The position numbers were made by a program, and so were the translations under genes. A DNA stretch of 64,000 bases from Trichosphaerium sp. ATCC 40318 (lineage: Eukaryota > Protista > Tubulinea): the NCBI GenBank assembly GCA_038496445.1, contig JALMLS010000242.1, positions 35,090 through 99,089 of the forward strand, given 5' to 3'. Below are positions 11,245-43,636 of the stretch, in pieces (the stretch's first letter is position 1; every line of letters begins with the position of its first letter). The notes beneath the pieces were generated by a model. The model saw only the letters and a program-made list of their open reading frames with translations, did no database searches and had not been told where the DNA came from.

Positions 11245-12069
11245 ATGGAAGAAAATTACACCGAAGGCGTTAATCTGTACTTATTCGACCTGTTGGCGCT
11301 ACCAGTTGAAGTAATAGTTCATATTCTTAAACAAGGAACTTATACGCTCCACTCAGCTCAAACATGCCGTCTGATGAGAGATATTGTAAGAAACCATGTT
11401 GGATATGGTCATATCACTATTACCAACAAAAGCCAATTGAAGATGCTTTCAGGGAGTCCTTTATTGAAGAATACAGCCATCTGTTTGAATGATCTACCAA
11501 TATATGATTGCCACTTGCGTTTACTTTCAGGTGTCCAAAGTATAAACTTGAGTGGTACATCAATAACTGATGAGGGCTTGAAGGCATTGTCAGGTGTACA
11601 CACAATCAACCTTTCTAAATGTAAAATAACAGATGAAGGTGTCAAGATGTTAATAGGTGTACATACCATTAACTTGCATGCTTGTAAATTGATAACAGGT
11701 GATGGTATTAAAGCATTGGCTGGTGTACATACAATTAATTTGGGATCTACATATGTAACAGATGAAGGTCTGAAGTCATTGTCAGGCGTTCATACAATTA
11801 ATTTGAGTGCTTGTAGATTGATAACAGATGAAGGTGTCAAGGCGTTGGCAGGTGTTCACACTATCAACTTGTTTGCTTGTAATTCAATAACAGGTGAAGG
11901 CATCAAGGCATTGGCAGGTGTGTATGAAATTCGTTTGTCAGGTAAAGCTGGGACAGACGAAGGTTTAAAGTCTTTGGCAGGAGTGCACACTATCTTTATT
12001 TATAACCATTCAGTTACAAAAGAACATGTTAAGGCATTAACAGGTGCAACCAAAATACATTGTTTTTGA
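11245..12069 (+). CDS. Intronless F-box-like + GVHT-LRR protein
   Basis: LLALPVEVIVHIL followed by about 8 GVHTINLSxCxxITDEGxKAL repeats; paralogue of 620-2105. Confidence 0.9.
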   Translation: MEENYTEGVNLYLFDLLALPVEVIVHILKQGTYTLHSAQTCRLMRDIVRNHVGYGHITITNKSQLKMLSGSPLLKNTAICLNDLPIYDCHLRLLSGVQSINLSGTSITDEGLKALSGVHTINLSKCKITDEGVKMLIGVHTINLHACKLITGDGIKALAGVHTINLGSTYVTDEGLKSLSGVHTINLSACRLITDEGVKALAGVHTINLFACNSITGEGIKALAGVYEIRLSGKAGTDEGLKSLAGVHTIFIYNHSVTKEHVKALTGATKIHCF

Positions 12070-13322: not shown

Positions 13323-16300
13323 ATGGCCAACATTGATAGTACAGACAACGGTAAGTGAAGCTCCTCAATTTTCAGCTCCATAAAAAAAAAAATTTGTCAC
13401 GTGCCATTACGATTTTCACGAGAAACGTTTCCGCTTTTCGGCGTGGGTTGCCCATTGCGAGAAAAATTCGCTGTAGCGTTTTTTGCACACAATTTTGGCG
13501 CTGTCACTAAACAAACAAAAGTGTTTGGTTTAGTATGTCCGTGCATAGGCAAGGCAACCCACAAATTATTAAATCTTTTTGTGTAAAGACTTTTGAAAAG
13601 TCCAAAGAAGTTTTCTCACTGAAAAAAACCAATTAAAAACATTGTTTGGCATCACTTCGCGTAGAGGATGCTACATAGGCATTTTTTCAACTTTTTGCAC
13701 AAAGTGAGGGAATCGCAAGAAACTCAAAAGTACTTTTTCGTAACCCATACTTTTTCGTGATATATTCAAAGCCTAAAAGATTTTTCTTTACTTAGTTGTG
13801 CTTATTTTACTCACAAAGGTTTGGACATAAAAGAAGAGTATGAAGTAGGAGGTCATCTCAGATATAGGGGAGAGGTAAAGAATGGCAAGCATGACGGTTT
13901 TGGTGAGCTGTATCATATAAAAGATATTGGCGAAATCAAACAAGGCGATACTCTCGAATACAAAGGTCAGTTTAAGGACAATAAGTTTCATGGTGATGGC
14001 GAGCTGTATCTCTCAGATGGTACTCTCGAATACAAAGGTCAGTTTAAGGACAATAAGTATCATGGTGATGGTGAGCTGTATCGCACAAATGGTACTCTCG
14101 CATACAAAGGTCAGTTTAAGGATGGTGAGGTTCATGGTGATGGTGAGTCTTATGTCTCAAATGGTACTCTCGCATACAAAGGTCAGTTTAAAGGCGGTTT
14201 ATATCATGGTGAGGGTGAGTTTTATTTACATGGTAGCCTCTATTACAAGGGTCAGTTTAAGGACCATTACCGTGATGGTTTTGGTGAGCTGTATCATATA
14301 AAAGATATTGGCAAAATCAAACAAGGTGATACTCTCAAATACAAAGGTCAGTTTGAGGCCAATAAGTTTCATGGTGATGGTAAGCTGTATCACACAAATG
14401 GTACTCTCGAATACAAAGGTCAGTTTAAGGACAATGAGTATCATGGTGATGGCGAGCTGTATCTCTCAGATGGTACTCTACAATACAAAGGCCAGTTTAA
14501 GGACAATGAGTATCATGGTGATGGTGAGCTGTATCTCTCAGATGGTACTCTACGATACAAAGGTCAATTTAAGAACAATCAGTATGAGGGTGTTGGAGTG
14601 TATTTTTATCAAAATGGTACCAAGTACATTGGGCAATTTGACAACAACAAGATTCAAGGTATTGGTGAGAAGTATTTGGCAGATGGTCGCAAATACATTG
14701 GTAAATTTGAGAATGCTAAGGCAGTAGGTAAAACACAGAAAAGTATTGCTGGAAAACCAGACCAGGCTGCCTTTTCTAACAACATGGATAAAACATTCTG
14801 TGAAGAATCCGTTTTTCCTAGCAATGATGTACAAGAAGATATAACACCAGTTACTGTGTGTTCTGATGGCACTACAGATGAGAGAGATCTCAAGAAATTG
14901 TTTCCGAATCCAGATAATACTATCCTTGATATCAATGATCCAACTGTACAAGGTATACCAGATGGAAAAAGAATGGTATTTGAATTTTATTCTAAAAGAC
15001 GCTACCAATACTGTAACAGTATTATTTTGAACCACCAAGATAGCTTTGAATCAGGTCTTTATGGTGATATTGTATTTATCTATGACCTTTGTAAAAAAGA
15101 TCCTGAGATATCACTTCATGAAGGTGCGGTGTCTTTTATACCACTACCTTTATACTTATTGATTATTTAAATAGTAACAACTATGGCACGTGGTCTTTCT
15201 GGAGTACGTGTGATACCCATAAAAAAGGACAAAATATCAGACAAAATGATACAACAGTTTAAACACATTTATTGGAGTGACCTCAGTAGTTTAATGAGAC
15301 ATCACATTGCTGATGGAGTGAGTCATAACAACTACGATTTTGTTGAGCAATTAGAAGCCAAAATAATGGTTGTAGGCCATGAAGGATCAGGTATTTAAGC
15401 TTGGATGAGTGATACACTAAATATTTATTAGGCAAGACAACACTTGTGAGGACATTGGCAAAGGAAACAAATATAATAGCGGATTCAACTATTGGTTTTG
15501 ATACATCACATCTCTCGTATGTTTAACTACTTTAGCGCTTGGGTTTAATGTGCTTTAGGTTCCAGGGCGTATCATTCACAGTGTTAGACTTTGCTGGACA
15601 GACGGAATACAAAGGATTACATAAGTACTTTTTAGCAAAGCAACTTACAATTTACATCATCGTTGTAAGTTCATAGTACACCAATATCACACTTGTTTCC
15701 TTATCATTCATCTTAGATTGACTTGTCAACATCAATCAAAGAGCAGCAGAAACACCTTAAATATTGGTGTCGGGCTTTAAATGAGATACTACATGATCAA
15801 GACCCAGAGCTATACTCAGTGATTGTATTTGGATCCAAGTTAGATATCTTTTTAGGCGATATCAAGGCCAATAAACAATCACTGCTCCCTATCGGACTAT
15901 CACTAGTACAGTACTTGTGCTTAGACGGTACCACCTTTATAACTTTTTTACAATCGCTTATTCTTTGTTGTTTAGGAACAAGTGCTCTTGTCAAATTATT
16001 GGATCAGCAAGCCAAGTACTTGAAGGCCCAATATCCAAAAGTACCATTGATCTACATTGACATAAAAAAAGCACTTGAGAATACAATCACAAACAAGGAT
16101 ACCCTAAAGGGTAACATCATATCAGTGTACGTTGTGTTTTAGCTGTAGTGGGTCTTGCTTTTGCTGATCAAGTATTTAATTAGGAGGAAAGTAGTAGAAC
16201 TGATACCCAAGATATGTGCAATGTCTCCAATAGAGTTGATTGCCGCATTAATTACCTTCATTCCATTGGTAGCATCATGTTTGATGAGGTGTGCGCTTCT

Positions 16301-20297: not shown

Positions 20298-21637
20298 ATG
20301 CAACACGTACAAGCTGTCATATATTTCTGTTTTTTAGTCTTATTCGGACAACTCGCAGTCGGTCAGACTCTAGAATACGAGTTTAACTTTAATGGAAATC
20401 TATTAGATGACGTTGGTGACGGGTACCCCTTTTAGGTGTTCCCTCACATGATTATTTACTTTTTCTCAAATAGAAACTTAACAATAGGCATACCAGAGGT
20501 CTATAACATGACAGAGGGCTGTCTAGAGCTACCATTGAACACAAACCCTTCGTTGGTACTAAACAACCCGGACATTCTAAAAAACGCACCATACACTGTT
20601 ATACTTCAAGTCCAAGTACTACAAACAAGTTCTTTCGGGAGAATCCTTGGATGGGTACCTTCCAGTGACAGTGGCTTGCTCTTTCAAGGAAATACCATTG
20701 ATTATTTTGGATTTTCTGGTAGAACTGATTCCTACAATGTGCTTGATGATATCAGCTTGATCTTTTTCTCGTACGCCAAAGAAATTTGAAACTTAAAAGA
20801 AACGAACCTTTACTTCTTGTTTTTTCTTACTCTTTCATTCACAGGTATGACCCTACAACAAAAAATGCTACGTTTGGTCTTGTGGATAATTCAACAATAC
20901 GGTCATCAAACATTGTATCAACTGGGGCCCCAAATATTGTGGATACAGTACGAATAATGACAGATAATACTGGAAGCTTCGGAAATGAGCATTACAAGAC
21001 ATGTCTTTATAAAGTGATGTTCTATTCCGGAGCTTTTATTCCAACATCAATCGAGCCACCTACATTACCACCACCAACAACTACAGCACCAAGTACAGTG
21101 TCTCCAACAACTTTACCTCCAACAACGCTACCTCCAACAACTGTGCCTCCAACAACTGTATCTCCAACAACTATGCCTCCAACGACTGTGCCTCCAACAA
21201 CGCTACCTCCAACAACTGAGTCTCCAACAACTGTGCCTCCAACGACTGTACCTCCAACGACACTACCTCCAACAACTACAGCACCAAGTACAGTGTCTCC
21301 AACAACTTTACCTCCAACAACGCTACCTCCAACAACTGTGCCACCAACAACTGTATCACCTACAACACCTACAACGCTAGCTCCAACTGAAGCACCAACA
21401 ACTGTATCACCAACAACGCTAGCTCCAACTGCACCTCCAACGACTACAGCTCCAACGACTGAAGCACCAACAACTGCGTCTCCAACAACTGCATCTCCAA
21501 CAACGATGGCACCTACAACTGAAGCTCCAACAACTGATCAACCAATCACTCTGGGATTAGCATCTAGCACATTTTTTACGCTACCTTCGTTAGCTTTGTT
21601 TGTTGTTACAACAGTTGCATTACTTGCAACACAATAA
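20298..21637 (+). CDS. Secreted/GPI-like surface protein: LamG-like N-domain + mucin-like PTT repeats
   Basis: Signal peptide MQHVQAVIYFCFLVLFGQLAVG; YEFNFNGNLLD start typical of LamG-like domains; 15-bp repeats encoding (P/S)PTT(L/V); hydrophobic C-terminus. Confidence 0.8.
21058..21540 (+). repeat. 15-bp CCTCCAACAACT-based coding minisatellite
   Basis: Tandem CCAACAAC/CCAACGAC units with a higher-order duplication (21075-21165 similar to 21270-21360). Confidence 0.9.
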
Positions 21638-22199: not shown

Positions 22200-25100
22200 T
22201 TACAGTACACAGTTGCTAGCAACCAGTTTTAAAAGCGCTGCTTTAAAACCCTTATAATTCTGGGTAGCAGCTTTGAGATAGCACTCAATATACTTGCTGC
22301 CAGTCACAACATCCCACGTCTTTTTAAGTATGGCAAGATTATCGATACTATCCTGTACCACCCAGTTGTTGTATGCAGTATCAATTGAAGTCTTCATGCG
22401 ATGATAACTGCAAGTATACAATGACACAAAGAAAGGAATACAAATCGCCAAATTGATTGTAGACATCGGTATCAGCTGATATTCTAGATTCTTTACCGTA
22501 CATATATGCCTAAACTTCCATCCCTCACGTCTTTTCATTTTTGTACCATCGCCTGAAGCACTTCCCCAACAGGTCAAGACATAGCGTGGATTTGTGGTAC
22601 CACAGCTCTCCATAATGGCTTTCTCTGTTATATTTCTACAACAAGAAGTTTAGTTCTTGGAAAAAAAACTGTAAGCGGTACCTGTGAACAATACCCCGCT
22701 TGTGCACTTCTTCTAGAGTATCAATGAGTTCCAATGCTTTTGTTATGTTGAATGTAGTTTCATCAGGTTTTACTAGATACTCCATTGTAATACCAGTTGA
22801 TGCAATATGATACTAGTAAGAGAATGAGTTTTGTTTCAAAGCTCTTCAAACGTACAACTTTGGGAACTCCAGGGATATTCACCAAGCGACTCAATACTTC
22901 TATTTCATTAGTGCCCAAGGATGCAGTTAAGTACTGTTTAAATGCCACTGGTTGTGGACTGCTACGAGTGCTGATGTCCACCTTGTAAATGGTAGCATTG
23001 AAACCTACTCCAAGTACTTCTGTAGGTGTATATTGCTTACCCGCAATTGTACATAATATTGGAGTATACCCAAGGTTTTCTAATGTTAGGCTTAGCAGGT
23101 GTAACAACTGCATTAGTCCCTCATCCGCAGTGTGAGAGATATTCAGCGCTCTGTACATAGCTGTAAAAAGAGATGTTATGTATTCAACACCTTTAGAGCC
23201 TAAAGCGTCACCAGGCGTGTCTGCTGTTTCTACCGTTTTCTTAAAAACGTCCATTACGTTTGTTTCAGTATAGCTGTATGATGGTCTCGAGGAATCATCC
23301 TTCAAAAGTGTCATTTTGAACATTTTAATTTTTACCATATTCTGAAGAATACCGTATACGTATTTGCGATGAGGTTGTGCTTCCATAATTGAATGCATAT
23401 TTTGCCATACTCTACCTTCCTCATCTGGAGTGAAATTATCTTCTAAACAATTCAATATGTAAGTCAAACTGGCTCAAGTTTGCGTACTAGAACAAAAAAC
23501 AATATTCCATGTCAACACGTGATGGTGCCACGTGAGTTCTCCATGTTCAGTATTTTGAAGCTGTTTTGGTACTACGACTATACCGGGGCTTGAAACAAAG
23601 GTATCATCTGGCCGGAGAAAGGCACTGAGGGTTTCAGTAATGGGTATGCATGTATCTTTATTTTCAACGGAGTTTCGAGGGTTCTTGGAACGAAAGAATG
23701 TGAATACCTCTAAGCAACGTTAGATAGTGCACCTTTGATACCTGTACCTTTTAATTTGATTTTATCAAAGAAGTGTTGATTTCTCTTCTTGGCACCGGTG
23801 CAAACATACGCAGTATCTTCCAATCCTTGTATTTCTTAGCACGTGTATTTTCAGAAAATTACAAAAAAACGTACTCATCTTCAGTTTTTCAGCTAAGTAC
23901 TGCTGTTTGCATTGGCGCTCTAGTTCTTTATACACTCTAGTTTCCTTTTTTTGTGTAAGTGGATTAGATCTTGTTGTTTGTTTTACTCTTATCAGCTTTA
24001 CTCTATCATTGCATGTGCATAGAGAAGGAAACTTTTTACATTTCTTGCAACGATTGTCAGCTGTACTTGAAATACAATTGAGGATTTCATTTAAAACACC
24101 TTTGTAGTCTATGGCATCTGCTCGTTGCAAACAACGTCTCCAATTGAAGGGAAGAACCCTTGCCCAAACCTTTTCTAGAGCTTCAGCGCGCACTCTTTTG
24201 AAAACCTGATTCCCCCTTGCGTGTGCCTCCAGAAAACCCTCATATGCTAAGTCGACTTTATCCTTGTTTTGTTTCGACATACAATAGTATGCCATCACAA
24301 AAATGAATGAGTACAAGTCATCCTTTGGTGTGTATGCATTACTGGAGAGGTACTAGCCCACGCTTCATACAATTGTGGAGCGAACATGAGACCCCCACTT
24401 AAACTAATTCGTCCAGTATCTGTTGTGGCGGCTCCCCAATCAATCAACATGTACCGTGGTTTTTCTTCTTTGCAAGTTGGTGGTAGTAGCATGATATTCG
24501 AAGTAGATATGTCTCTGTAGAAAATAAGAATGAGTTGTAAAAGGAATAGATAATATGTGGTTACTTGTGGATAACACCTCTACTGTGAACAATCTCAAGA
24601 GTTTCAATTATGTGTTTTGCAAGTAACTCAAAGTCAAACTCAGCGTCTCTGTAGCTTTGACAAATACAATCCATTGCAAATCCTACACCTGGGCTTCACC
24701 AACCTAAACAGCTTGAATAAAGTAGTATTGGTTGATTTGGAAAGAAATCGTTGATAAACACGTACAACTTTTGGAACACCAGGAACATCTTTGAGAAGAT
24801 GTAATATTCTCATTTCTCGATCCATTTTTGGCTTTATTGGGTCACCCTTATTAAAGTAATTCTTGAACGCAACATACTTTGGAGGATCATTGTTGGACAA
24901 GTATATCATGTAGACTGCTCCATGAGCACCTGTACCAAGCACTTTTCGAGGTACATACGCAAACCCATTGATTGTAAATACTTTCGAAATATATCCAAGA
25001 TCGCCAAGCTTGTAATTTAACAAACTTACCAAATGCTTTAGCCCTTCACCTGGAGCATCTGAATCAATTAAATCCATTTCGGGCGTCGAATAATACATGG

Positions 25101-26023
25101 GTTTGTATAGATGTCCTTGTGGCAATCTTGAAAAATTGAATTTTCTGATAATTTTGAAGTATTCCATACACAAATTCACGACGAGGTTGGGCTTTAAGGG
25201 TTCTATGCATGGCACTCCATATCATGCCTTTATCATGTGCGGTGAATGAAGCTAATAACACAATAATAAGCAACAAATAAACCAGTCATTTGCATACCGT
25301 TGCCTTCCAATATGTCCCAAGTTAACACGTGATGATACAATGTACAATCTCTTTCACGAATCGTTTTGAGTTGTGGTATGATTCGAAAACAATTTGGAAG
25401 AAATGATTTGGCATCTGGAACAACATTTGCACGAATATTTGGACAAATATCATCACGTGATAAAAATGATGCGAAATCAGCAGTGTATTTGTCAAGAGAA
25501 CATGATTTGAGCTTTAACATCATCAATTGAAATGTTTGACATGACTCAATGTATTGCTTAGACGTTTCAGGATGACAAAATGAGTGTTGATATTCTGTTT
25601 TCTCAGCAATGGAATGTGCAATGGCAGGATACCCTTACGAAAACAATTAGAAAAAAAAATCAAACAGTAAAAGGTCATACCTTGCATCGTCCTCTGCCTC
25701 AAGGATGTATCTCTCAATAAATTCAAGTACAGCTGCTCGTTCTCATTTTCCATCACTCTTTGGCGTTTGTGTTCGTATTCATTTTCTTCTTCAGCACAAT
25801 GCTGTCTTTTGTTTTGAAGAATTCGTAATTCTGCTTTTATTTCTTCAACTTCCTTGCTCAGTTTTTTTTTGAGCTCTTCAGATATGATACTATCGCCAGG
25901 TCTTTCGTTTTTGGCTTCTACTAATTCATGAGTTGAAACCTTGCTGTGTATTTCGGTTTGTTCAGTACCAGTGGTCTGTTTGTTGCAAGCATCAAACACC
26001 ATATCAATCATTTCTGCCGTCAT
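22200..26023 (-). CDS. Fused tandem [degenerate REase + kinase]-[degenerate REase + pseudokinase] protein, Crinkler/FunK1-like
   Basis: Module 1: YHHVLTWDILE, AQPRREFVYGILQN, LGTGAHGAVY, VAFK, HR|DISTSN, IDWG. There is no stop after CxxCxxxPSLCTC; the frame continues through short introns (~23836-23875, ~23710-23747) into module 2: WHHHVLTWNI, AQPHRKYVYGILQN, LGVGFNATIY, VAFK, HR|NITEKA, TCWG. Confidence 0.75.
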
Positions 26024-26342
26024 TATGCTGTGCTAATAAAGTAAGCAAACAAGCGATTTAGAAAGTAGGTATTGCAGAAAACTGGATCTTAAATAAAATA
26101 CTGATAATTGCTTATACTGTAGTATGCACGCGCAGGTGCAGTGATTAAAGCGATTTAATTGTTGTGTAGATTGAAATTATTAAAAACAACTCAAAATAAG
26201 GTTTTTAGGTTTACGCCATAAGGACACGCACAAAGAAACCTGTTAGGCTAAAATTATCTATTATAAGACGTTTCCCGACTGTTCTAACTTGCTTGCTTCT
26301 GTGTACTTTAGCTGACTTGTCGAATTACGTAGAAGGTTGTTT

Positions 26343-26365
26343 ACCTTTTTAAGTAAGGTCAGAAC
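26343..26365. promoter_or_regulatory. Conserved imperfect palindrome ACCTT-N7-AAGGT-CAGAAC upstream of the kinase gene
   Basis: Near copies at 33112-33134, 36967-36987 and 37172-37195, each upstream of a kinase-family paralogue. Confidence 0.5.
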
Positions 26366-27296
26366 ATCACACAAAAACCACCAAGGTTTTTTTCCAACGT
26401 TCTGTAGGCACATGCCTCTTTTGGAAACCTTAGTTACCACTATTTTAATGGAATGTGATTCGATGTTGGGGTTATCGGAATTGACCTGGAAAATCGACAA
26501 AAAAGATTACTGATAATCACGTTTTCATTAGTTCGTCGGTAGTCATAACCTGAACATTCTATGGCTCAATATTTGATAAAATGGATCCAGGTGAATCAAA
26601 TATTTGTGGCTTGTTACAATGTACTGAATGCTTATTGTGATTAGATTAGGCAAAAAAATGAGATTATCAATATTCTTTTTGGTCGATAATCCTCAATTCC
26701 TTCCTTTAGTTTACATTTGAAATATCCGCGCTGCATTGTTGTATTTATTAGGAGCAGTTGAGCATGAGCAGCAAGACTGGACACTTGTAGATATATCACA
26801 AAGTGCAAAATTCACAGATCTTAGGTTCCCTTGGAAAGTTTCAAATCCGTCAAATCTGACACATTAGGGAATGACACGTACGTCAGGAATTGACTCATAA
26901 TATTGATAGTGTCAAAGCCAACAGTTCTGGGATCTTAATAATTTGAACTTGCAGCTTTATTTGTCGACCTCATATCCACTCCCTCCTACACTGGCTAGTT
27001 GTTCATTCCCAACTATCTTATAGACAGCTATACTTCTGTATAGAGTTACACAAAGTTTTCAACGCCTACTGGTAAGCATGCGAGAAGTTTCGTTTCCGTG
27101 TGTTGTACCAGATCTCTAATTGCTAGTAAGATAGTAAAGACGCGCAGAATAGGGTTTTAAGCGCATTGAAAGTAAAATATCTCAACGCAATGCAAGTAAA
27201 TCATAACACGTATCAACTCAAACGGATACGCTGGTGGTTTTATTTAAGTATACAACGTAGGTTTCGTATCGAATACATATCTATAAGCGTGAGCAT

Positions 27297-27536
27297 TCAG
27301 ATTACTCTAGCACGCCAATTTCGCCATTCCCAGGTCGTGCAATAGCCCATTGCTTTTCCTGTAATCTGCCTCCACCACAAATTCCTGCAATTACGAGTGT
27401 AAAAAGGGCGATACCTACTCAAGCATATCCTTTCGTTGTTACTACAACAGCAAACAGGTGATCTTATGAAACTTTGCACCTCTACAGCAACAAAAGCGAG
27501 CACTACTAACGCAAGGAGAAGGTGAGCTAAGCGCAT
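27297..27536 (-). CDS. Small secreted Cys/Arg/Trp-rich peptide (antimicrobial-peptide-like)
   Basis: Signal peptide MRLAHLLLALVVLAFVAVEVQS; 57-aa mature part with 6 Cys, 10 Arg, 5 Trp and only 2 acidic residues; intronless; AATAAA downstream. Confidence 0.75.
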   Translation of the reverse strand: MRLAHLLLALVVLAFVAVEVQSFIRSPVCCCSNNERICLSRYRPFYTRNCRNLWWRQITGKAMGYCTTWEWRNWRARVI

Positions 27537-28497
27537 TGTTGATAGTATTTTATGGCTAGAAAAGGGCGAAAACGACCCGATTTGACATCAAAGAAACCTA
27601 AAAAAGGAAGCGATCTTTCCCAACTAGCGCCTACCTAGAGAGAGTTAGTTAGTTATCATTGTTGGCCGCTACGCGTAGTAGATATTTACTTGACAACTAA
27701 AAGCAAAAGAACTGCTCTATCAAGGACATCCTGAGTTTAACTACGTGGGCCACAACGTTATACTAATTGCGTAAAAGTTTCATCATGCTGGGACTATTGG
27801 ACAATCTTTGCTGATTAGCGTTTGTTTAAGTGTGCAACGATGTTCATGAGCACTCCTATAACATTTGCAGCGCTTACACGTTTATCTATCTTTTATTTTT
27901 GTTCTCAACAATCGTTACAATTGACTGCAACAGTATACCCGCGCGTAGAGTTATCTATTTTTTAGGTTTAAAGCTGCGGAAAAAACCCTGGAAGCGACTT
28001 TAAGATCAAAACAAAGAAATATCTCGACAAGGCGACCTTCTAACATTGTGACCTTCCTCAAAACCTTTTCAATACCTCATGTTATACGTGATGGGGCGCT
28101 ATACTCTCACAGTGACGGACAAAATGAGTTTACGACTATAAGCCAAAGTCAACCACAAATTTGTTTTTGGAAGACTTCTAGTGCGCTAGTAGACTCCACA
28201 ACGACAAAAATCGGAGATTGATATGTCTATTTTGAGTAAGTCTAGAAAATTAGGGAAACGAAAGTAAATTTTTAATTAGTCGCTGCCACGTTAAACTGGA
28301 ACATACGATTCGATAAACTTGACATGCTTCGAATTGACTTGAACACCAAAAAAGGAAAAACTGCGTACTGTCTAAAACTAGCGTTACACACTCAATAACG
28401 AAGCGCAGGTACGTCTGACTTTAACGTCCTATAAAGCTATAACTCGCTAGTAAGTATTAACACGCCTTAGAAGCAATACAAGACAGTACAATTCGCT

Positions 28498-29498
28498 ATG
28501 AAGCTTTTCGTATTTGCTCTTTGCTACATAGCTGTTATTCACTGTATTATCTCCGTTGTGGGCTGTACTGTAACGCCAGATACTGAAGTTGAAGACACAA
28601 GCAGCGCTGGCTTTACCGTTTGCGGTAAAAACCTTGGTACGTAAACAACAGCATTGTAACGCAGAAACACTCGAAACAAATAATCTCAGAAATTCGCGGA
28701 AAGGCTTGTTACGCTCAAGTGGCGATTGTAAATAAAATTGCGGGCATTGTAAGGTACCAATCTAGCAATGTAAATTAAGATGTCTCTTATTGCTATTTAG
28801 AACACAAATGCCTGGTTTTCTAGATAAAGCATCTATTGTTATTTCTGCTGGAGTGACAGGAGGCGTGTATTTTCATGGCTCAGGAATAGTATCAACTGCT
28901 GTAAGCAATAAACAAGCAGGATGCTATGTTACGCCTTCTGTTGGTGCGTTTTCTACACTATTTGTTTTAGCACATGTTTTGCGTCCTTTGTGCTAACCAT
29001 ATTTAGGTATAGGGTTTACAATGATAGCAGAACTACAACTAGGCATTGGTGTTATATGTAAACCTAAAGACTTAGAAGGTAGGTTTCTGATGAAACACAT
29101 TTGATACGCCTAACTAGTAAAAAATAGGAATGTTTATATCTGCAAGGCTGGAAAGTGACTATGCAGTTGGTTTTGGAGGCCGATATTATATATATCCATA
29201 TGCTGGAATAGACGTGTATTTGTCTACGGGTATAGGGTTCGAATTGGGAACTGAGATGGGATACACAATAGCATGGAAAAAACTTAAGTTGACGTCAAAA
29301 AAAAAACATGATGAAGCATCAGCTCGAGTCAAACAAATAAAGATGGAGGCACTACAAGAAATTGAAGAAGAAAACCGACAAATCAAAGAAAGGGAAGAAG
29401 AAGAAAGGAAAATGAAAGAAAGTGAGGAAGAAGAAGCAAGAATAAAAGAACAACATAAAGCCGATTCGTTTTGGTGTAAGCTCAAATTCTGCAATTAA
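28498..29498 (+). CDS. Secreted protein with Gly-rich amphipathic beta-strand domain and charged C-terminal coiled coil, multi-exon
   Basis: Signal peptide MKLFVFALCYIAVIHCIISVVG; exons join ORFs 28790 and 29130; GIGFELGTEMGYT-type alternating strands; E/K/R-rich tail. Confidence 0.7.
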
Positions 29499-29926
29499 TA
29501 AACTATCAACTTACTTCCAATTGGATGGTGTCATACTACAATCTTGATTTTCTAGCTTTAGCTGATAGATATGGTAGATCCCTATTGTCCATTGGCTTCT
29601 ACAAACAATAAACACCCGATTGGAGGAGAACCTATCTCTTGGCTTGACCGTTTCGTCACGAAGCCTAACCCTTGTTTTATTAAAAGTTGCAGACGCAATA
29701 AAACAATCGCCGAAAAACCAAAAACTTTTCCGAGTACACTTGTAGTCATTGGGTAACCTCTAGCTGTTGTTACACCTCCAGGTTTAACATTAATTCGGCC
29801 ACCTCCCTTAGTCTAAAACGTCCGTAAAACCTGGTTTGTACAGCCATAAAAAAAAAGAGAACTTAAATTTGCAGTGCTTATCTTAAACTTGCAAAATGTA
29901 ACTGAAAAAAAAAAAGAAATTTGTTT

Positions 29927-32310
29927 TTATTCTCTGCTAAGACCGTATATGTTATCACACGTGCATAATGAAGGGTACTTTCTACAGCTCGTACAACATT
30001 GATCAATAGTACTTGAAATACAATTGAGTATTTCATTTAAAACACCTTTGTAGTCTGTGGCATCTGCTCGTTGTAAACAACGTCTCCAATTGAGGGGAAG
30101 AACTGTTGCCCATGCCTCTGTAAGTTCTTCAGCGCACTCTCTTTTTTGTGTTTCAGTACCCATACAATGGGCCTGTACAAAACTCCCGTATGCTGTATCA
30201 ATTTTATCCTTGTCACTCTTGGAAAGATAAAAGTATGCCATCACGAAAATAAATGAGTACAAGTCATCCTTTGGTGTGTATTTATGTTTCTTTTTTGGAT
30301 GTTCATCGATCCACTCTTCATACAATTGTGGAGCAAACTTTAGACCTCCACTTATACTTATTGGCGCATTCTCTGTTGTGGCAGCTCCCCAATCAATCAA
30401 CATGTACCGTGGTTTGGCTTCTTTGCAAGCTGGTGGTAGTAGCATGATATTCGAAGCAGAAATATCTCTTTAGATAAGAATGAGTTTGGCAAGGAATACA
30501 TGAGACACACCTATGAACAACACCTCTACTGTGAACAATCTCAAGAGTTTCAATTATTTGTTTTGAGAGCAATACAAAGTCAAACGGAGCTTTTTTGTAG
30601 CTTTGACAAATACAATCCATTGCAAATCCTACACCTGGAGATGTAGCGACCTAACAAGCTTGAGAATGATATGAGTATGTGACATAAAACGTACAACTTT
30701 TGGAACACCAGGAACATCTTTGAGAAGATCTAATATTCGCATTTCTCGATCCATCTTTGGCTTTATTGGATCATTCACATTCTCTATGTAATCCTTGAAC
30801 GCTACATACTTTGGAGGATCATTATTGGACAAGTATATCATGTACACTGTTCCATGAGCGCCTATACCAAGTACTTTTCGAGGTACGTACTCAAACCCAT
30901 TGATTGTAAATACTTTTGGATTGTATCCAAGATCGCCAAGCTTGTAATTTAACAAACTTACCAAATGCTTTAGTCCTTCACCTGTAGCGTTTGAATTGAA
31001 TAAATGCATTTCAGGTGTTGCATAGTGTGTAGTCTTGGATACAAAAGCACCTGCTTTGGCGATCTTAAAAAATTGAATTTTCTGATAATTTTGAAGTATT
31101 CCAAACACAACTTCGCGACGAGGTTGTGCCTTAAGAAGTTTGTTCATGTCACTCCATATCATTCCTTTATCATGTGCAGTGAATGAAGCTACATAACAAA
31201 TAATAAGCAACAGTTTATAACACTAAAAGTACATACCGTTGCCTTCCAATATATCCCAAGTTAACACATGATGATACAATGTACAATCTCTTTCACGAAT
31301 GGTTTTGAGTTGTGGTGTGATTCGAAAACAATTTGGTAGAAATGATTTAGCATCTGGAACAACATCTGCACGAATATTTGGACAAATATCATCACGTGAT
31401 AAAAATGATGCGAAATCAGCAGTGTATTTGTCAAGAGAACATGATTTGAGCTTTAACATCAATTGAAATGTTTGACATGACTCAATGTATTGCTTAGACG
31501 TTTCAGGATGACAAAATGAGTGTTGCTGTTCTGTTTTTTCTGCGATGGAGTGTGCAACGGCAGGATACCCTTACGAAAACAATCAGATACAGCTTGTAAT
31601 ATAAAGAACATATGATACCTAGCATTGTCCTTTGGCTCAAGGATGTATCTATAAATGAATACATTAATTGTAAGTACAGGTATGTGTTCTTGTTTTCTAT
31701 TGCTTTGTGGCGTTTGTATTCGTATTCGTTTTCTTCTTCAGCACAACGATGCTTTCTTTTAAGAGAATAAATTTGTTGGTTATGCTCTTCTTTCAGTTCT
31801 ATTTCTACTTCCTCCCTTATGTGGGTTTTAAGCTTGTTGGATAAAAGAGCTTCAATACGTTCTTGCATACTTTTCTCTCTACTAGTAGTATCTGGGGTGG
31901 AAACTATGTCTACTAGGTGTCAACACACATCTCTAACACATTCTTGGTCTGTACCTTTAGTGCGTTCGCTACAAGCATCAAATACCTTATCCACAACTGC
32001 TGCCTTGCGCAGCCCTTTTGTGATGGTGACATTGCACTGTGTTGCAATGGTTGAAAGCTCGCTGATGGAGAACTTATGTAGTTGTTTCTTTGATAAAGCT
32101 ACACTTGCAGTGTCCTATATACCAATTAGCACGTGACAGTACTAATGTGAAGCTTACTTGCTGATTGCCGCACGTGTTAAATACCAAATCTACAAGTGCT
32201 GTCTTAGGCAAACCATTTTTTACAGTGACATTACACTGAGTTGCAATTGTTGTAAGTTCCTTGATGTTGAATTTGTGAAATTGTTTCTTTTTTAGCAACT
32301 TTGTCGTCAT
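29927..32310 (-). CDS. Crinkler/FunK1-like protein C: 2x helical HeH/SAP-like repeats - coiled coil - degenerate REase - active kinase
   Basis: KFNIKELTTIATQCNVTVKNGLPKTALVDLVF repeated twice; AQPRREVVFGILQN; LGIGAHGTVY; HR|DISASN; IDWG; ends CTSCRKYPSLCTCDNIYGLSRE*. Confidence 0.85.
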
Positions 32311-33960
32311 TGTGGCGCTACTCTTAATCAGTACGCAAGTCACATTTGAAAATAGTTGGTCACAAAGAAAAAAGAAAACTGTGCAAGGTAGTTGTTTTAG
32401 TGCATCGCGTAGAACAAACCGGTTTACAAAACGGTCTCTTCTTTTGCAGTATTGTCAATAAAAACACCTGAAAATGGTCTCACACAAGTTTTTACGCGGC
32501 CAATAGGCTAATTGTACTCAAATTGCAACTTCTAGCGCAACAAGACGCACAAGATCTTTTCAAGGAGTCTACACTCGTTTTATTATATGGCTAAGCCACT
32601 AGCAGCACCAATTAATGCTTTGATTTCGTATTGAGCTGACTTATGCAGAGTTTTTTTTTTAACACGGCATGTTTCGGAGAAGAAAACTGAGAGTTTTATT
32701 CCTGCGAAAAAGAAGCTTCTTGACCAGCTGTCTGATTCCTCTGACTCTATGTGTGCACCTCGTACACATATATCTCTGTCAAATAAACCTTTGACGACCT
32801 TGCTCACCACCACCGCTGCGCTCCCCATCTTCCTGTTCTCAAACAAGTGTGTTTGGGGGGTTCTACGTTCTGGCTGGTAACTTGGTTGTACCAATTTAGG
32901 CCAAACACTGTCCACGTTATATACCCTGTATATATTCTACTACGTTGTCGCTGGTCCACTAACTGATAGGTTTTCTGGCCCAGTAAGTTTACTTTTTCTT
33001 AGTCCTAATCGAGACCAAGTGCACTCCAATTTCATGACTTGCCAGAAAAGTGTTTATAATTTTTGTGACACTTTCGTTCTTAGCTTCGGAGTTGGCTGTG
33101 TGAAGTGTGTCACCTTTTTAAGTAAGGTAAGAACACGATGTTATAGTGCATTGTAGCTTGCTAACATGTACCCACAGCAGTAGTTTCAGTTGACAACCTT
33201 TTTTTTTCGGTACTCCATGAAATCATTTCTAATAGTCTATGTAATCGCTAGAATAATTCCCATTTCCAAGAGCTGACATTACTTAACGAGGGCACTTCTA
33301 AGTGTGACCTAACCAAGGATTACTGTACCAGGCATGGTTTCTGAATTGTATTTAGAAATAGACAAAAGCGATTTGAGGCTAAGGTAAACAGACAAGTTCA
33401 TAAATAGGATGATAACAGAACACTCGAATATATCAATTGGATACAAAATGAAGATGCAAACAGATGGACTTCAGACAGATCTAAGCGCCACGTTCAATTG
33501 GACTATACAGGAGTTATCTGAACAAAATAGTTTGATAAGATCACAGATGAATACACCGCGTTTGCAATTAGGAAGTGAGTCGAAGAAATCCTGCCAGACG
33601 GTACAATTGTATTGAGCATTTATACAACCTAGTGTCCCTATCATTCAAGTTTGGCCAAAGTATCAAAGTGCAGGACCTTGCAGGAACTAGTAGATCTGTA
33701 CGATCGCTGTCAGCTATGCTAGTTCTTGGAAGAGTGCAATGTGAATCCAGAAACAGATGCCGGCAAGGCTCCAATAACATGAATCAAACGTTGGATCTGC
33801 TAGTTGTAGCTAAACTGTCATTTCTGGAGTCATACTACAATCTTGACTACCTTTATGCGACAGGTATGGTTCAAAAAAGAAGGTTGTTTGCGGTGCAAAT
33901 CTAAACCTGCTTTGTACATCTGTAGCAAACGTAGCTGAAAAAAAAAAGAGAAAATTGGTT

Positions 33961-36405
33961 TTATTCTCTGCTAAGACCGTATATGTTATCACACGTGCAT
34001 AGTGAAGGGTACTTTCTACAGCTCGTACAACATTGATCAACAATGCTTGAAATACAATTGAGCATTTCATTTAAAACACCTTTGTAGTCTGTGGCATCTG
34101 CTCGTTGTAAACAACGTCTCCAATTTAGGGGAAGAACTGTTGCCCATGCCTCTGTAAGTTCTTCAGCGTATAGTCTTTTGAATTCCTCACTGCCATTAAA
34201 ATGTGCTTTTACAAAACCCTGGTATGCTGTATCAACTTTATCCCTGTTCAGTTTTGACATACAATAGTATGCCATCACGAAGATGAATGAGTACAAGTCA
34301 TCCTTTGGTGTATATTTATGTTTCTTTTTTGGATGTTCATCGATCCACTCTTCATACAATTGTGGAGCAAACTTTAGACCTCCACTTATACTTATTGGCG
34401 CATTCTCTGTTGTGGCAGCTCCCCAATCAATCAACATGTACTGTGGTTTATCTTCTTCATAAGGCGGTGGTAGTAGCATGATATTCGAAGCAGAAATATC
34501 TCTGTAGACAAACAAGAATAAGCTGTTGAAATAGTTTAAACTATCAATACATACCTATGAACAACACCTCTACTGTGAACAATCTCAAGAGTTTCAATTA
34601 TGTGTTTTGAGAGCAATACAAAGTCAAACGGAGCTTTTTTGTAGCTTTGACAAATACAATCCATTGCAAATCCTACACCTGGGGATGTAGCGACCTAACA
34701 AGTTTGAGAATGATATGAGTATGTGACATAAAACGTACAACTTTTGGAACACCAGGAACATCTTTGAGAAGATCTAATATTCTCATTTCTCGATCCATTT
34801 TTGGCTGTATTGGATCATTCACATTCTCTATGTAATTTTTGAATGCTACATACTTTGGAGGATCATTATTGGACAAGTATATCATGTACACTGTTCCGTG
34901 AGCGCCTATACCAAGTACTTTTCGAGGTACATACTCAAACCCATTGATTGTAAATACTTTTGGATTGTATCCTAGATCGCCAAGCTTGTAATTTAACAAA
35001 CTTACCAAATGCTTTAGACCTTCACTTGGAGCACCTGAATCGATCAAGTTCATTTCAGGTGTTGTATAGTGTGTAGTTTTAGATACAAGATGTCCTGCTT
35101 TGGTGATCTTAAAAAATTGAATTTTCTGATAATTTTGAAGTATTCCATACACAACTTCACGACGAGGTTGTGCCTTAAGAAGTTTGTTCATGTCACTCCA
35201 TATCATCCCTTTATCATGTGCAGTGAATGAAGCTACATAACAAATAATAAGCAACAAATAAAACCAAGATAAAGTCAAGTACATACCATTGCCTTCCAAT
35301 ATGTCCCAAGTTAACACGTGATGAAACAATGTACAATCTCTTTCACGAATCATTTTGAGTTGTGGTGTGATTCGAAAACGATTTGGAAGAAATGATTTAG
35401 CATCTTGAACAACATCTGCACGAATATTTGGACAAATATCATCACGTGATAAAAATGATGCGAAATCAGCAGTGTATTTGTCAAGAGAATATGATTTGAG
35501 CTTTAACATCATCGATTGAAATGTTTGACATGACTCAATGTATTGCTTAGACGTTTCAGGATGACAAAATGAGTGTTGATATTCTGTTTTTTCAGCAATG
35601 GAATGTGCAATGGCAGGATACCCTTACGAAAAAAATAAGAACGAAAAAAACACATTACTGTAAAAAAAAAACGATGATACCTAGCATAGTTTTGTGGCTC
35701 AACGATGTATCTATAAACGAATACATTAATCTCAAGTACAAGTGTGTGTTCTTGTTTTCTATTGCTTTGTGGCGTTTGTATTCGTATTTATTATCTTCTT
35801 CAGAACAACGCTGTCTTTTTTTAAGCAACTGTAATGTTGCTTGGTTTTTTTTATCAATTCTTGCGTTTTCTTCGATTTCTTCTTTCATTTCTTCTTCAAC
35901 TTCCTTTTTCAGTTCCTCCCTTAATATTTGCTTTGCTAAAGCGTTGTTGACGCGTTCTCGTGTATTTTTCTCTCTACTAGTAGCACCAGGGGGAACTATG
36001 TCTAAAATATGTCACGTGATGTCAGCGACATTTTAACATCAACTCCGGTACCTATGGCGTGTTTGTTACACGCATCAAACACCTTATCCACAAATACTGC
36101 CTTCCGTGATCCCTTTACTACAGTGACATTGCACTGTATCGCTATGGCTGAGAGTTCATTAATGGAGAACTTTTTTAATTGTTTCTTTGTCAAAGCTGTT
36201 GTCGTAGTGGCCTATATCACTTAGCATGCAACTATTGGTAACCTGAACTTACTCTCTTATTGTTACAAGCGCTATGTACTAAATCTACAAGTGCTGTCTT
36301 TCGCAAACCATTTTTTACAGTGACATTACACTGAGTTGCAATGGTTCTAAGTTCCTTGATGTTGAATTTGTGGAATTGTTTCTTTGTAAGCGAAGCTGTA
36401 GTCAT
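33961..36405 (-). CDS. Crinkler/FunK1-like protein D (recent duplicate of C), active kinase
   Basis: Near-identical to 29927-32310 over most exons and several introns; HR|DISASN and DWG intact. Confidence 0.85.
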
Positions 36406-37824
36406 TACTGTGGTGCAAGTCAGTTTGAAAAATTTTCGCGCATAATGAAAGAAGTAAAGGGTTGTTGGCTACTGGGAGCTTTTTTTTTAGTGTTTTGCGT
36501 TCGCAAAGAACAAAACGGGGCGCAAATAACAAGATATTGCCTAGCAGTAACTCAGAATACCTTCAAATGCTTTAAACCTTCTTGTTTTAGCGGCTAGTTG
36601 GTTAAAAGCAAAATTACAACTTCTACGACTACAAATACGCACAAGATTTGTTCTCTTTAACCTTATATAGCAAAGAACACTATCAAGCTCACAGTTACGG
36701 ATTTCTCACACATAGGCTGACTTAAACCTCTCAGTACAGTTTTAATTCGCATTATTTGGCTGTTGTTACATATCTCCGCGTATTATTCGGTCCTAGTTGT
36801 GCATGACTGAGGCACCAAATCAGGAACAAGGTTTTGCTTGGCTTAATGCAGTATTAAACCTTGTTGCAACGTGTTTTGTAATTGTTTGTAGTTTTGTTCG
36901 TCGAAAGCTTTCGTAGTTCTTGATTTAGTTCGGAGTTGGTCGCGCTACCTTTGAGATGTTTGTGCTACCTTTTTAGTAAGGTCAGAATACCAGTTAAAGC
37001 GCTTTATAGCTTCTCAAACGGGTACTATACAGCCGTAGCATCAGTTTATCTTAGCCTGAAAGCGACTGCAAGAGCCGTTTTTAAAAAAGCACTAGAAAAT
37101 CGTCTGCAAAAGCATACGTGTCTTCTATGTGGTGTTGGTGTGAGCTCTCGATTAGGTAAACTTTAGAAGCAACCTGGTTTAAGTAAGGACAGAACATGAG
37201 TTAAAGCGAGCGAAATCGCTGTTAAACCTTACGTCTAATAGCATTCTGAGAGACTTTTTTGCGGAAAACTACATAGTTGTTGAAATAGGCTTATTTCAGA
37301 TTGTTTTTTGTGCTGAATTCTGGCGTGTTAGAGCCATCAACTAAGGCTAAGCGGCTGTATTTGTGGAGCACAAAATAGTTAGTCCTATTTAGGTATCACA
37401 GCCAAACGTTGTTAAGCAAGAACGCTAAGAACTTGCATCAGCTTATGAGCTGGGAACGTACGCAAGTAACCTAATTTAGAATTTGGTTACTTCGAACTCC
37501 GTCATATGCAACCGGGATTTTACAATTGTGAAGGAATCGTTCAGCGAGCTTATATTTCATTCTAAAAAAAACACTGCTTTTGGCCGTCAAAACAATCTTT
37601 TAAACATATTTCAAGAATACTACAAGCATTGCAACAGCTCCTCTACCTAGATACAATCTAAACATAAACTTGGTACACTTCATTCGTTTTGAATACAGAG
37701 ACTCCAAAGCTTTCGCATGGTTAAACTTTGAAGACATTGTATTAGTTTAAATACACTTTGCCTGCTTTCACTGTTTCTCTTGAATCGTTTCTTATCATAC
37801 TTTTTGCTCATTTTTGCATAGGCA

Positions 37825-40059
37825 ATGGACAAATCCACAATACTGTTGATGAAATACCTATCTACAGCGCAGCTTAAATTAGTAGCAACCGAGCAAGATA
37901 TCCCACATGATAACAGTTCTTCCGCTGATCAATTGGCACAGTCCATAGTTGAAACAGGTACGAGCTCTCACATGTGAACGATAAGGTATCTTACGATTAT
38001 TGTTAACCAGCTGATAGCCGATCGCTGTTCAGCAGACGAACTAAGCGCCTTAAGAGATCTCATTGTCCTTGCATCGGAACAAAACAATACCAAGAAGAGA
38101 AAACGTGACGACAGACAAATCTTTACAAATGAAATACCAGCCAGGCAGCCAGGCAAACGTATTAAAGAGCCTGAAAATAAATATTGCAAAGTGTACCAAG
38201 GACTAGAGCATCAATTTAGACACATGTCTTTAAGCGAAAAACTGAATATGGGTAAGGTTTTACCTTACCAATCACCGCGCTGACATTGCGATAGATATGA
38301 AGAAAACTGCACATCTGTACATTAATGAAGGCTCCAATAAAGATGCAACAAAAAACTACTTTGAAACCATCAAACTAAATGGTATGAACTATATACGTGT
38401 CACGTGTTTACAAGTCTAACATTGATGTAGGAATAATGGGACACTATAAAGATCAACACGTAGGATTTGCGAACAAGCTAAACGTCATTCAGAAATCTCT
38501 CTCCTCAGTAACTGATCAGTCTTGCTACGAGATTAGCGAAACTCTTAGTGTCAGCATTCCCGATCACAAAAAGTTTTCAAGCCCTGATATTGCGGTACTT
38601 CCAAAAGTGCCTAAAGGTGCCAAAGCTGGAGATGATGGCCATGTAACAAAGTACCATCACGTGTTGTGTTGGAAGATTCTTGAAGATGATAGTACGTGAA
38701 CACTTTTGTGAAATATTGTTTACTTACTGATTTGTTTAGAAGAAGGCTTCACAGAAGATGAAGAAGGGAGAGTTTGGAAGGAGATGCACGAAATTATGCA
38801 AGCTCAACCTCATCGTAGTATGGTGTTTGGTATTCTGATGAATTGGAAGATAATCAAGTTTTTCCAAATGAGCATTTCGCCTAATTTTTCTAAACCCAAA
38901 TACGTATATTGTGCGTCTGGTTTCTTGCATCTGTTCAAAGCATCCGTTTTAGCACGTACCACCAAAACCGATAAAAAAGTAGAAAAAAAAAATCGCGGTG
39001 GTATTTTTTCAAGGCTCTATGAGTATATTATTGGTCCTGATGCTGCTACTAATGAGGGTTTAAGGCATTTATTCACATTACTAACTTCTACCCCGGTGGA
39101 TCTCGGATACAAGCCAAAAAAGTGCATCATTGGAGGGAACCAAATTATTCCAAGAAAAGTACTTGGTGTTGGATGCAATGCAACTGTTTACAAGGTGTAT
39201 TGCCAGATGCAGGGTGGTAATAAAGAGGCCCAATTCTATGCTTATAAACTATATGATACTTCCAATATTAATATTAAGAGCGAAGCAAACATTCTGAACA
39301 ACCTAGAATCGGTACCTGGAGTTCCCTCATATGTGCGTACTACCTTCGTTTTTTATACATAATTTCTCATTTTCGGTTTAGTATAAGCTTGAAGATCTTG
39401 GTATTACAATGGAATATCTCCTGAAACCAGAACAAAGTGGTCTCGACTTAACAAAAGCCTTAGACCTTATTGAAACTCTGGCAAGAGTACATAAAAGCGG
39501 TGTTGTGCACAGGTACAAAATTTGTAAATGTTTGTTTTGCAAAAGGTGCTAAGTGTATTGTAGAAACATAACCGACACAGCTATCATGACGAAGTGTTCT
39601 CAAACTGAGCCACGTTTTATGTTAAACAGTTGGGGTAATGCTACAACCACAAGCTGCCCTATGGAAATACGTGAGGGATGGAAGTTTACACCGCACTTGT
39701 ATACCCGTACAACCGAAATTTCTTCCACTCATGTATACACCGTACAAGACGATTTGCATGCGTTTATAAACGTCATTGCATACATGAGGATGGACGAGGG
39801 AACAAGGACAAAAATTGACACTGCCTACAACGACTGGGTATACTTAGATACCTACACCAATTTGAATAAGCTGCAGAACTTATGGGATCCGATTATACGT
39901 AGCTGGCTAGACTGCCATCAAGCTGCTGAAGCACGTGATTATGGACAAGTAAAATTTCTAATGCTTGCACGGATGGTACCAATGTGCCAGCTCACAAATA
40001 TGTTTGGGCTCACTGCACAACAACGCACATATCTTGAGCTGTATACGCCAAAACACTAG
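37825..40059 (+). CDS. Crinkler/FunK1-like protein E: helical repeat - REase-like - pseudokinase
   Basis: SPDIAVLP..YHHVLCWKILE, AQPHRSMVFGILMN, LGVGCNATVY, YAYK, HR|NITDTA, NSWG; closest to module 2 of the fused gene; divergently oriented to D. Confidence 0.8.
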
Positions 40060-42874: not shown

Positions 42875-43636
42875 ATGGCGTCAAAACGAAAGGTAGTTCG
42901 CGTAAAGCCTATAAAACCACATGAAAACTAACCTGTGACAACCACATAGATTAATACCTCAGAGAAGAATGAATACGCGCTATTAAAGCTCCCTTTGGAG
43001 CTACAGCTCGATATCATCGATTTAGATGCAGAAGTATTCATAAAATGGCCTGTTTTATCCAAACACACCGCTCTTACTACAAGATTCAACAGCGTGTTTG
43101 AGAAACATGGTAAATGGAGGAAATACTATGGATATCAATTAGTTGTTCAACCTTCTTTCATTGAAGGAGAAGAAAAAGTGTGGACTGCAGAGAGTAAGAA
43201 TCAAATAGCCATGGAATGTTATTATGTCAATAACAAGAAAAATGGAGAAGCGAAATGTTGGTTCATTAATGGAAGGATAGAATCCACGTGTTTTTACTCA
43301 AATGATATAAAAGTTGGAGAAGAGAAAAGTTGGTATGTGAGTGGTGTCTTAAGAAGTAGTATTTGTTATAGCGACAAGTGTACAGAAGAACAAGAAGGTG
43401 ATGTAATATATTGGCATGATAATGGTCAAATGTCTAGCAAGTGTTGTTACGTTAAAAACAAAAAGAGTGGACTAGAAAAGACATGGTTTAGGAATGGACA
43501 ATTAAAGAGACAATGCACTTATGTCATGACTAAAGAAAATTACTTTGCACAAAAAGATGGAGAGGAAATATGTTGGTACGAAGATGGTCAAATAAGGAGT
43601 AGATGTTTTTTTGTTAAAGGACATGTTAAAAGGTGA
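42875..43636 (+). CDS. F-box-like + MORN-variant (MORN_2) repeat protein
   Basis: Exon MASKRK splices in phase 0 to INTSEKNEYALLKLPLELQLDII; repeats KxGEEKxWYxNGQLxxxCxY. Confidence 0.75.

Follow-up and report, generated by a model that had tools for sequence, protein, structure and literature searches.

Whether a protein kinase and its catalytically dead relative are produced as one polypeptide is the question raised by a gene cluster at positions 22200-40059 of a 64,000-nucleotide stretch of DNA from the protist Trichosphaerium sp. ATCC 40318 (GenBank assembly GCA_038496445.1, contig JALMLS010000242.1, positions 35,090 to 99,089 of the forward strand), which is referred to here as the window. 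The window is eukaryotic and has 36% GC, and very short introns split its open reading frames (ORFs) into fragments. A preliminary description of the cluster recognised five homologous modules, each with a restriction-endonuclease-like (REase-like) domain and a kinase, divided them into an active and a dead clade, and held that the locus 22200-26023 is a fusion of the two types and that D and E are their separate, divergently transcribed pair. Its observation is partly confirmed and its interpretation partly supported. The five modules are borne out: tblastn searches with D and E as queries find exactly five in the window, all within 22200-40059, and no sixth. Along the DNA they follow in the order module 2, module 1, C, D and E, that is, dead-active-active-active-dead, and their DNA identities are 85.7% between C and D, 82% between module 1 and C or D, and about 68% between module 2 and E. 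The cluster is probably a tandem cluster of a Crinkler/CR-type REase-fold/kinase family, in which the locus 22200-26023 is a decaying chimeric relic that encodes no kinase-pseudokinase polypeptide.

The evidence for the relic comes from gene models built by hand from the window sequence and from comparison of the paralogues. All 27 introns in these models are of the GT-AG type and are 38-73 nucleotides (nt) long, and the locus 22200-26023 was spliced at the introns common to C, D and E and at the correctly phased introns in module 2. Module 1 (23876-26023, minus strand) is a degenerate active-type copy that carries HKDISTSN and DWG motifs, and neither flank shares the reading frame of its kinase core. 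It is truncated at its 5' end: both N-terminal repeats of the family are gone, the ATG at 26023 lies within a remnant of repeat 2, and no family-related sequence is found upstream of it by tblastn in the window. The first frame break, at about 25117 in the exon 25251-24762, lies in the linker between the REase-like domain and the kinase, and together with a premature stop (TGA 25066-25064) it occupies 25064-25120 on the minus strand. Two tblastn high-scoring segment pairs in different frames overlap within this one exon, and nucleotide alignments to C and to D agree on the break. The second break (24337-24357, minus strand) lies in a variable loop between the APQLYE motif and YTPKDDLYSF, and the frame of the ATG is restored after it; tblastn places this change of frame, too, within a single exon, at about 24357-24339. 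When the spliced locus of 3396 nt is read from ATG 26023, translation stops after 288 codons at that TGA, and 16 in-frame stops lie across the kinase core of module 1 before the frame returns at 24337.

Module 2 (22200-23875, minus strand) is a dead-type copy without exon 1 and part of exon 2; what it retains is a REase-like domain (PG..N-I-V) followed by a pseudokinase (HRNITEKA, CWG). Its exons (23834-23748, 23709-23488, 23442-22856, 22812-22682 and 22635-22200, minus strand) are separated by introns of 38-46 nt, all of which are GT-AG and correctly phased, and module 2 is open in its own frames. A compensated pair of frameshifts affects the αF segment (22389-22511, minus strand), where the homologous sequence (…DVYNQFGDLYSF…) lies in another frame. 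In a local alignment of this segment (DLYSF), the alternative frame reaches a BLOSUM score of 56 against 20 for the ORF frame, and the open frame over 22511-22389 consists of 41 unrelated codons. The locus 22200-26023 contains four frame breaks in 3396 nt, compared with none in the 6168 nt of coding sequence of C, D and E together (Fisher p=0.016; Poisson 7e-4). Because the frameshifts are confined to this locus, general assembly noise is an unlikely cause of the breaks. The claim that 22200-26023 encodes both types in one polypeptide is not confirmed for the locus as assembled, with its four breaks, the premature stop and the 16 in-frame stops. The Rosetta-stone argument drawn from it, which depends on both domains lying in one uninterrupted ORF, is not supported by a locus with these frameshifts, this stop and two 5' truncations. 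The fused-gene reading arose from ORF fragments that were read across frame breaks.

The junction between the two modules is itself in frame. The homology of module 1 to C and D ends at about 24010, the stop codon used by C and D is out of frame in module 1, and reading runs on into a remnant of exon 2 of module 2 (about 24010-23876). This read-on stretch is homologous to the end of exon 2 of E (…AEKLKM against …SEKLNM), and after it two correctly phased introns lead into the REase-like domain of module 2. The chance of such an in-frame junction is about 0.1-0.2, given one third for the frame multiplied by the chance of no stop across 10-20 codons of uncertain origin. Another explanation of the locus is that module 1 is a dead pseudogene and module 2 a working stand-alone, headless REase-like pseudokinase that starts from an internal ATG, for example the one near 23880 where the exon-2 remnant ends, with no fusion at all. 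The model of module 2 can be read through for about 510 codons and its splice sites are intact, and its 41 out-of-frame codons are stop-free, which has a chance of about 0.05 and hints at selection for the ORF. This explanation is nonetheless improbable, as a promoter and first exon of its own are absent from module 2 and unrelated sequence stands in place of its αF helix, the core of the kinase C-lobe. The reading of the whole locus as a relic accommodates the open segments as a matter of age: because all segments are stop-free in their own frames and all splice sites are intact, the decay would be recent.

The intact members of the active type show what module 1 has lost. Gene D (33961-36405, minus strand) encodes 710 amino acids (aa) in seven exons (36405-36253, 36211-36052, 36001-35681, 35622-35287, 35232-34735, 34678-34555 and 34501-33961), and its model has six GT-AG introns of 41-58 nt and is stop-free. 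Gene C (29927-32310, minus strand), which is likewise intact and encodes 699 aa, was modelled by carrying the exon boundaries of D onto it; every splice site is kept and the frame is open in its seven exons (32310-32158, 32114-31955, 31909-31619, 31569-31237, 31188-30691, 30634-30511 and 30467-29927). Both proteins consist of two SAP/HeH-like repeats of about 50 aa each, a charged and heptad-like linker (coiled-coil-like in D), a REase-like domain of roughly 180 aa, a kinase and a Cys-rich tail. The SAP/HeH-like motif of the active type is duplicated in tandem, with one copy per exon (D 36232-36405 and 36053-36211; C 32158-32310 and 31956-32114). The Cys-rich motif at the C-terminus (…DQCCTSCRKYPSLCTC…; D about 33990-34040, C 29955-30005), which E-type proteins do not have, may be a small metal-binding knuckle. 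The spliced models of C and D contain the full catalytic set of a kinase (GxGxxG, VAFK, αC Glu, HRDISASN and DWG). With the VAxK Lys, the αC Glu, the HRD Asp, the catalytic-loop Asn and the DFG-type Asp all in place, C and D are predicted to be active protein kinases. The motifs that had been given for the active clade as a whole, HRDIS.SN and DWG, are thus found in C and D, but module 1 has HKD in place of HRD; it otherwise retains the kinase residues, though its kinase core is out of frame.

The active-type copies do not evolve independently of each other. The ratio ω between C and D is 0.39, which points to purifying selection, and dS is uneven along the genes, being 0.57 at the N-terminus compared with 0.14-0.16 in the REase and kinase regions. 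Their homology (29894-32311 against 33927-36406) has its limits precisely at the start codon on one side and about 33 nt beyond the stop on the other, and the regions upstream of the two start codons are unrelated to each other. In a sliding-window comparison, the DNA of one tract of module 1 (25356-25655, minus strand), the exon for the N-terminal half of the REase-like domain, matches both C (31270-31570) and D (35320-35620) at 95-100% identity, while the flanking parts differ by 15-35% and dS outside the tract is 0.3-0.67. The tract is taken as a sign of recent gene conversion among the active-type copies, in which the broken copy would have taken part. The uneven dS, the limits of the homology and the nearly identical tract argue for concerted evolution by gene conversion. 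The ω of module 1 was rejected as a pseudogene test, because conversion between this copy and the genes C and D confounds it.

Gene E (37825-40059, plus strand) is the intact member of the pseudokinase type and encodes 644 aa in seven exons (37825-37957, 38018-38251, 38295-38381, 38431-38691, 38740-39332, 39382-39512 and 39564-40059), with six GT-AG introns of 43-60 nt. A single SAP/HeH-like motif, much more divergent than those of the active-type copies, is followed in it by a stretch of basic residues (KKRKR), the REase-like domain (PD..K-I-L) and finally the pseudokinase (HRNITDTA, SWG). D and E are divergently transcribed about 1.4 kb apart, as had been described: the region between their start codons (36406-37824) is 1419 bp long, and tblastn with D and E finds no family remnant in it. 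An intron 3' of the GVP motif has phase 0 in E (39333-39381) and module 2 (22813-22855), where it also sits a few codons further upstream, whereas the corresponding intron of the active type is in phase 1 (D 34679-34734). This shift could reflect either intron sliding or an alternative choice of splice site, and a phase-1 model for E would also be possible.

The division into two clades is recovered by a maximum-likelihood tree of the five modules and six outside homologues, in which the broken modules carried X at their breaks. E and module 2 group with a support of 100/99, and C, D and module 1 with 98/96, and the five modules are monophyletic with respect to the outside DUF6826+kinase proteins. 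The dead clade also has the motifs ascribed to it: E (HRNITDTA, SWG) and module 2 (HRNITEKA, CWG) both have other residues in place of the HRD Asp, the Asn of the catalytic loop and the Asp of the DFG-type motif. That the residue at the last of these positions differs between them (S or C) would be in keeping with one loss in their ancestor and relaxed constraint thereafter. All five modules retain the ATP-binding Lys (VAxK) and the αC Glu. E and module 2 are old paralogues, 43% identical with saturated dS, and pN (0.38) is smaller than pS (0.66). Because pN is well below pS and E is intact, the dead type appears to be maintained by selection; the neutral evolution that the preliminary description had named as an objection to its own idea is not what these two copies display. 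With their catalytic residues replaced and their sequences retained under selection, E and module 2 would qualify as pseudokinases. The root-to-tip protein branch of the dead type is more than twice as long as that of the active type in the tree.

The relation of these modules to known families is remote but can be traced. A phmmer search with the largest ORF of D (279 aa) against 1.84 billion representatives gives eight weak hits, the best with E=8.3e-7. Five of the eight carry the Pfam family PF20713 (DUF6826) and six carry Pkinase, often together with Pkinase_fungal, and the two shortest are without a family. One of them is a transcript of the testate amoeba Difflugia compressa and the others come from metagenomes; none of the eight is a close relative or a double-module protein, and the metagenomic contig of one outside homologue carries it as a solitary gene. 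No single exon of the cluster matches DUF6826 or SAP directly in Pfam. When the five REase-like regions are aligned by hhalign with the DUF6826 regions of the homologues, the match has a probability of 97.9% (E=5e-13). An AlphaFold2 (AF2) model of the DUF6826 region of one homologue, P0007, has a predicted local distance difference test score (pLDDT) of 78, a predicted template modelling score (pTM) of 0.77 and an αβββαβ core. By VIA-align, this model matches restriction-endonuclease-fold domains, best of all those of BpuSI (Z 12.6, 146 residues, root-mean-square deviation 3.4), DrdV (Z 11.7) and HsdR (Z 9.9), in each of which the match is to the nuclease domain, and that of TT1808 (Z 9.3); many Holliday-junction resolvases and type II enzymes rank below these. 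A Foldseek search of the same model against the Protein Data Bank (PDB) gives nothing at E<=0.001, the best match again being BpuSI (2.8e-3). The corresponding AF2 model of the REase-like domain and kinase N-lobe of D, which included 18 residues of an in-frame intron, has a pLDDT of 64.5 and less than 50 in the N-terminal half of the REase-like domain, and was left out of the fold search. The restriction-endonuclease fold of the cluster copies is thus carried over from the modelled P0007 by the hhalign match, and is predicted in this sense. The last exon of D, which encodes the kinase C-lobe, matches the fungal FunK1 family (Pkinase_fungal, PF17667) with E=2e-5, just under the cut-off. Taken with the DUF6826 and Pkinase families of the hits, the hhalign match and the fold of P0007 support the earlier suggestion in so far as the module is related to the REase+kinase core of Crinkler-type proteins. 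This architecture accounts for about one in six Crinkler/CR C-termini (PMC5289972).

The catalytic positions of the nuclease fold are altered throughout the cluster. They read PN..D-I-L in C, D and module 1, PD..K-I-L in E and PG..N-I-V in module 2, compared with PD..(D/E)xK in the homologues. The nuclease catalytic Lys appears to have been lost in all five copies, and nuclease activity is doubtful. At the other end of the proteins, the residue pattern of SAP/HeH domains (L..L.I.EL..IA....V...G..K..LV) fits the N-terminal repeats. Rho_N, a family of the same helix-extended-helix clan as SAP, matches the two repeats of D below the cut-off (E=0.015 and 0.0099), and the motif of E is without a match; searched as a profile against the PDB, the N-terminal repeats gave no match either. 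The ubiquitin-like (Ubl) header of Crinklers (LxLFLAK / DWL-HVLVxxP) was not found by Pfam scans of all N-terminal exons, and no hydrophobic N-terminus is seen in the gene models.

These features bear on whether the family is selfish. In Crinkler/CR proteins, REase+kinase combinations count as toxin modules (PMC5289972), the family turns over with relics and gene conversion, and the surroundings are rich in expanded MORN/ROCO and F-box-LRR genes, all of which would suit a selfish or toxin-like family engaged in conflict, in which the pseudokinase type would be linked to the active type as its antidote or immunity partner. However, the nuclease-fold domain, which is held to specify toxicity in CRN8 (PMC5289972), is the part whose catalytic Lys is missing in five of five copies; moreover, the header for secretion and translocation is absent, and adjacency is the sole link between the presence of E and that of D. 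Such a toxin-antidote system is very improbable here.

The adjacency of the two types carries little weight as a sign of partnership because, among random orders of three active and two dead genes, each dead gene lies beside an active one in 8 of 10 (80%). The orientations differ as well: modules 1 and 2 are arranged tail-to-head on the same strand and D and E head-to-head, so that the two pairs are not copies of one unit. It is unlikely that E-type proteins are obligate regulatory or decoy partners of D-type kinases and that the in-frame fusion of modules 1 and 2 was functional until very recently, or is still intact with its breaks being local assembly errors; if so, it would be an amoebozoan counterpart, with a nuclease fold, of the tandem kinase-pseudokinase immune proteins of plants. 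The tandem-protein explanation holds that 22200-26023 encodes a functional tandem kinase-pseudokinase protein, of which D and E are the split version, and that the pseudokinase regulates or guards the active kinase in the manner of plant tandem kinase proteins. In its favour, reading continues in frame across the junction and through two introns of correct phase into module 2, GT-AG is kept at each of the nine introns of the locus, both pairs of frameshifts are compensated, the pseudokinase clade is constrained, and D and E share their 1.4-kb divergent intergenic region. But the locus as assembled stops after 288 codons and contains 16 further in-frame stops over the kinase core, both modules are truncated at the 5' end, the αF segment of module 2 is garbled, adjacency is expected by chance in 8 of 10 orders, the two pairs differ in orientation, and no double-module protein is among the outside homologues found. 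Its rescue would take two additional introns, which C and D lack and which would either remove conserved residues or use GC donors and be shorter than any intron observed. The tandem protein is accordingly judged improbable. Introns bridging the breaks of module 1 were considered and rejected as unlikely, since neither C nor D has them and they would remove conserved residues or be of the GC-AG type and shorter than any observed; a permissive search for GT/GC-AG introns gives candidates such as chance would produce, for example a 61-nt GT-AG intron (25096-25036) and a 35-nt GC-AG intron (24357-24323).

Several points weigh against a decaying relic in a cluster of catalytically altered nuclease-fold proteins. 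Both frameshift pairs are compensating and the segments are stop-free, which is compatible with very recent decay and with an error in the local assembly, and hypothetical extra introns could bridge both breaks of module 1. Splicing and frame breaks are read from the assembled DNA. The ω of module 1 is low (0.26-0.46), although gene conversion can account for this. The loss of the catalytic Lys rests on the alignment of remote homologues, the direct model of D being poor in the N-terminal half of its REase-like domain (pLDDT <50), and the SAP/HeH assignment lies below Pfam thresholds with an empty PDB profile search.

On the reading of the locus as a relic, the cluster would be a tandem array of a family that expanded in the lineage of this amoeba-like protist. 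A full gene would comprise one or more SAP/HeH-like motifs, a charged linker, a DUF6826-type domain of the PD-(D/E)xK fold and a kinase resembling FunK1 and Crinkler D2. Two anciently split subfamilies would adjoin in it, one kinase-competent, with C and D intact and evolving in concert through gene conversion, and the other of the pseudokinase type, with E intact. The relic would consist of a 5'-truncated active-type copy without its stop next to a 5'-truncated dead-type copy, with four frameshifts along it. The products of the family may be intracellular, probably nuclear and associated with DNA, and the nuclease-fold domain, its catalytic Lys lost, probably binds or targets nucleic acid rather than cutting it. 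C and D would phosphorylate substrates, and E may have been retained as a non-catalytic paralogue that acts as a scaffold, regulator or decoy.

The closest detectable relatives are the PF20713 (DUF6826)+Pkinase proteins of Amoebozoa and metagenomes, for example P0003 of Difflugia compressa, which have the same architecture and are 30-37% identical over the second half of the REase domain and the kinase N-lobe. Unlike some or all of the cluster copies, they keep PD..(D/E)xK, HRD and DWG, and the Pfam DUF6826 model misses the cluster copies; none of them is double-module, and the one contig examined carries a solitary gene. The Crinkler/CR proteins with REase+kinase C-termini, such as Phytophthora CRN8 (DN17-D2), have the same order (Zhang et al. 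2016, after the summary in PMC5289972), with a PD-(D/E)xK-fold domain directly before a FunK1-like kinase. The likeness extends to the homology of the cluster family with DUF6826+Pkinase proteins, and a nuclear or DNA-directed role would be plausible by this comparison. Unlike Crinklers, the cluster family has no Ubl/LxLFLAK header or secretion signal and begins instead with SAP/HeH-like motifs and a charged linker; its copies have lost the nuclease catalytic Lys, one of its subfamilies is a pseudokinase, and its host is apparently a free-living amoeba-like protist. The FunK1 kinases of fungi (PF17667), which are matched by the kinase C-lobe of D and by outside homologues too, belong to a different taxon, and the cluster proteins add the REase-like and SAP-like parts. 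With plant tandem kinase-pseudokinase proteins such as WTK1/Yr15 (PMC6170490), the cluster shares the idea that an active kinase and a dead one, both from a common source, stay together. It differs from them in having no intact single polypeptide, in the nuclease-fold domain of its modules and in an unrelated kinase family, and it is not known to have an immune phenotype; the likeness is purely one of analogy.

If the pairing were true, it would carry the kinase-plus-pseudokinase sensor logic known from the immunity of plants over to a protist, and also to a Crinkler-type REase-kinase module. What the evidence points to is more modest, namely a family of the CR type in which a DNA-binding-like header takes the place of the delivery header, the nuclease-fold domain is without the canonical catalytic Lys and a pseudokinase subfamily has long been kept under selection. 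The exchange of the header, the loss of the catalytic Lys and the retention of the pseudokinase argue for endogenous, non-toxin roles of such effector-like modules in amoebae. The locus 22200-26023 also calls for caution, because evidence for a fused gene can stem from ORF fragments that span frame breaks.

An ORF at 20786-21637, adjoining the cluster, has internal tandem repeats (self-matches at 21067-21545) and a weak match to Extensin_1, and encodes a Pro-rich repeat protein. ORFs with F-box and LRR_6 domains (974-1738, 11245-12069 and 53860-55275) and with MORN repeats (13821-15170, 42995-43636 and 58981-59973) are abundant around it, and the MORN ORFs in the window are parts of ROCO-type genes. 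The neighbourhood of the cluster looks like a region of lineage-specific expansions.

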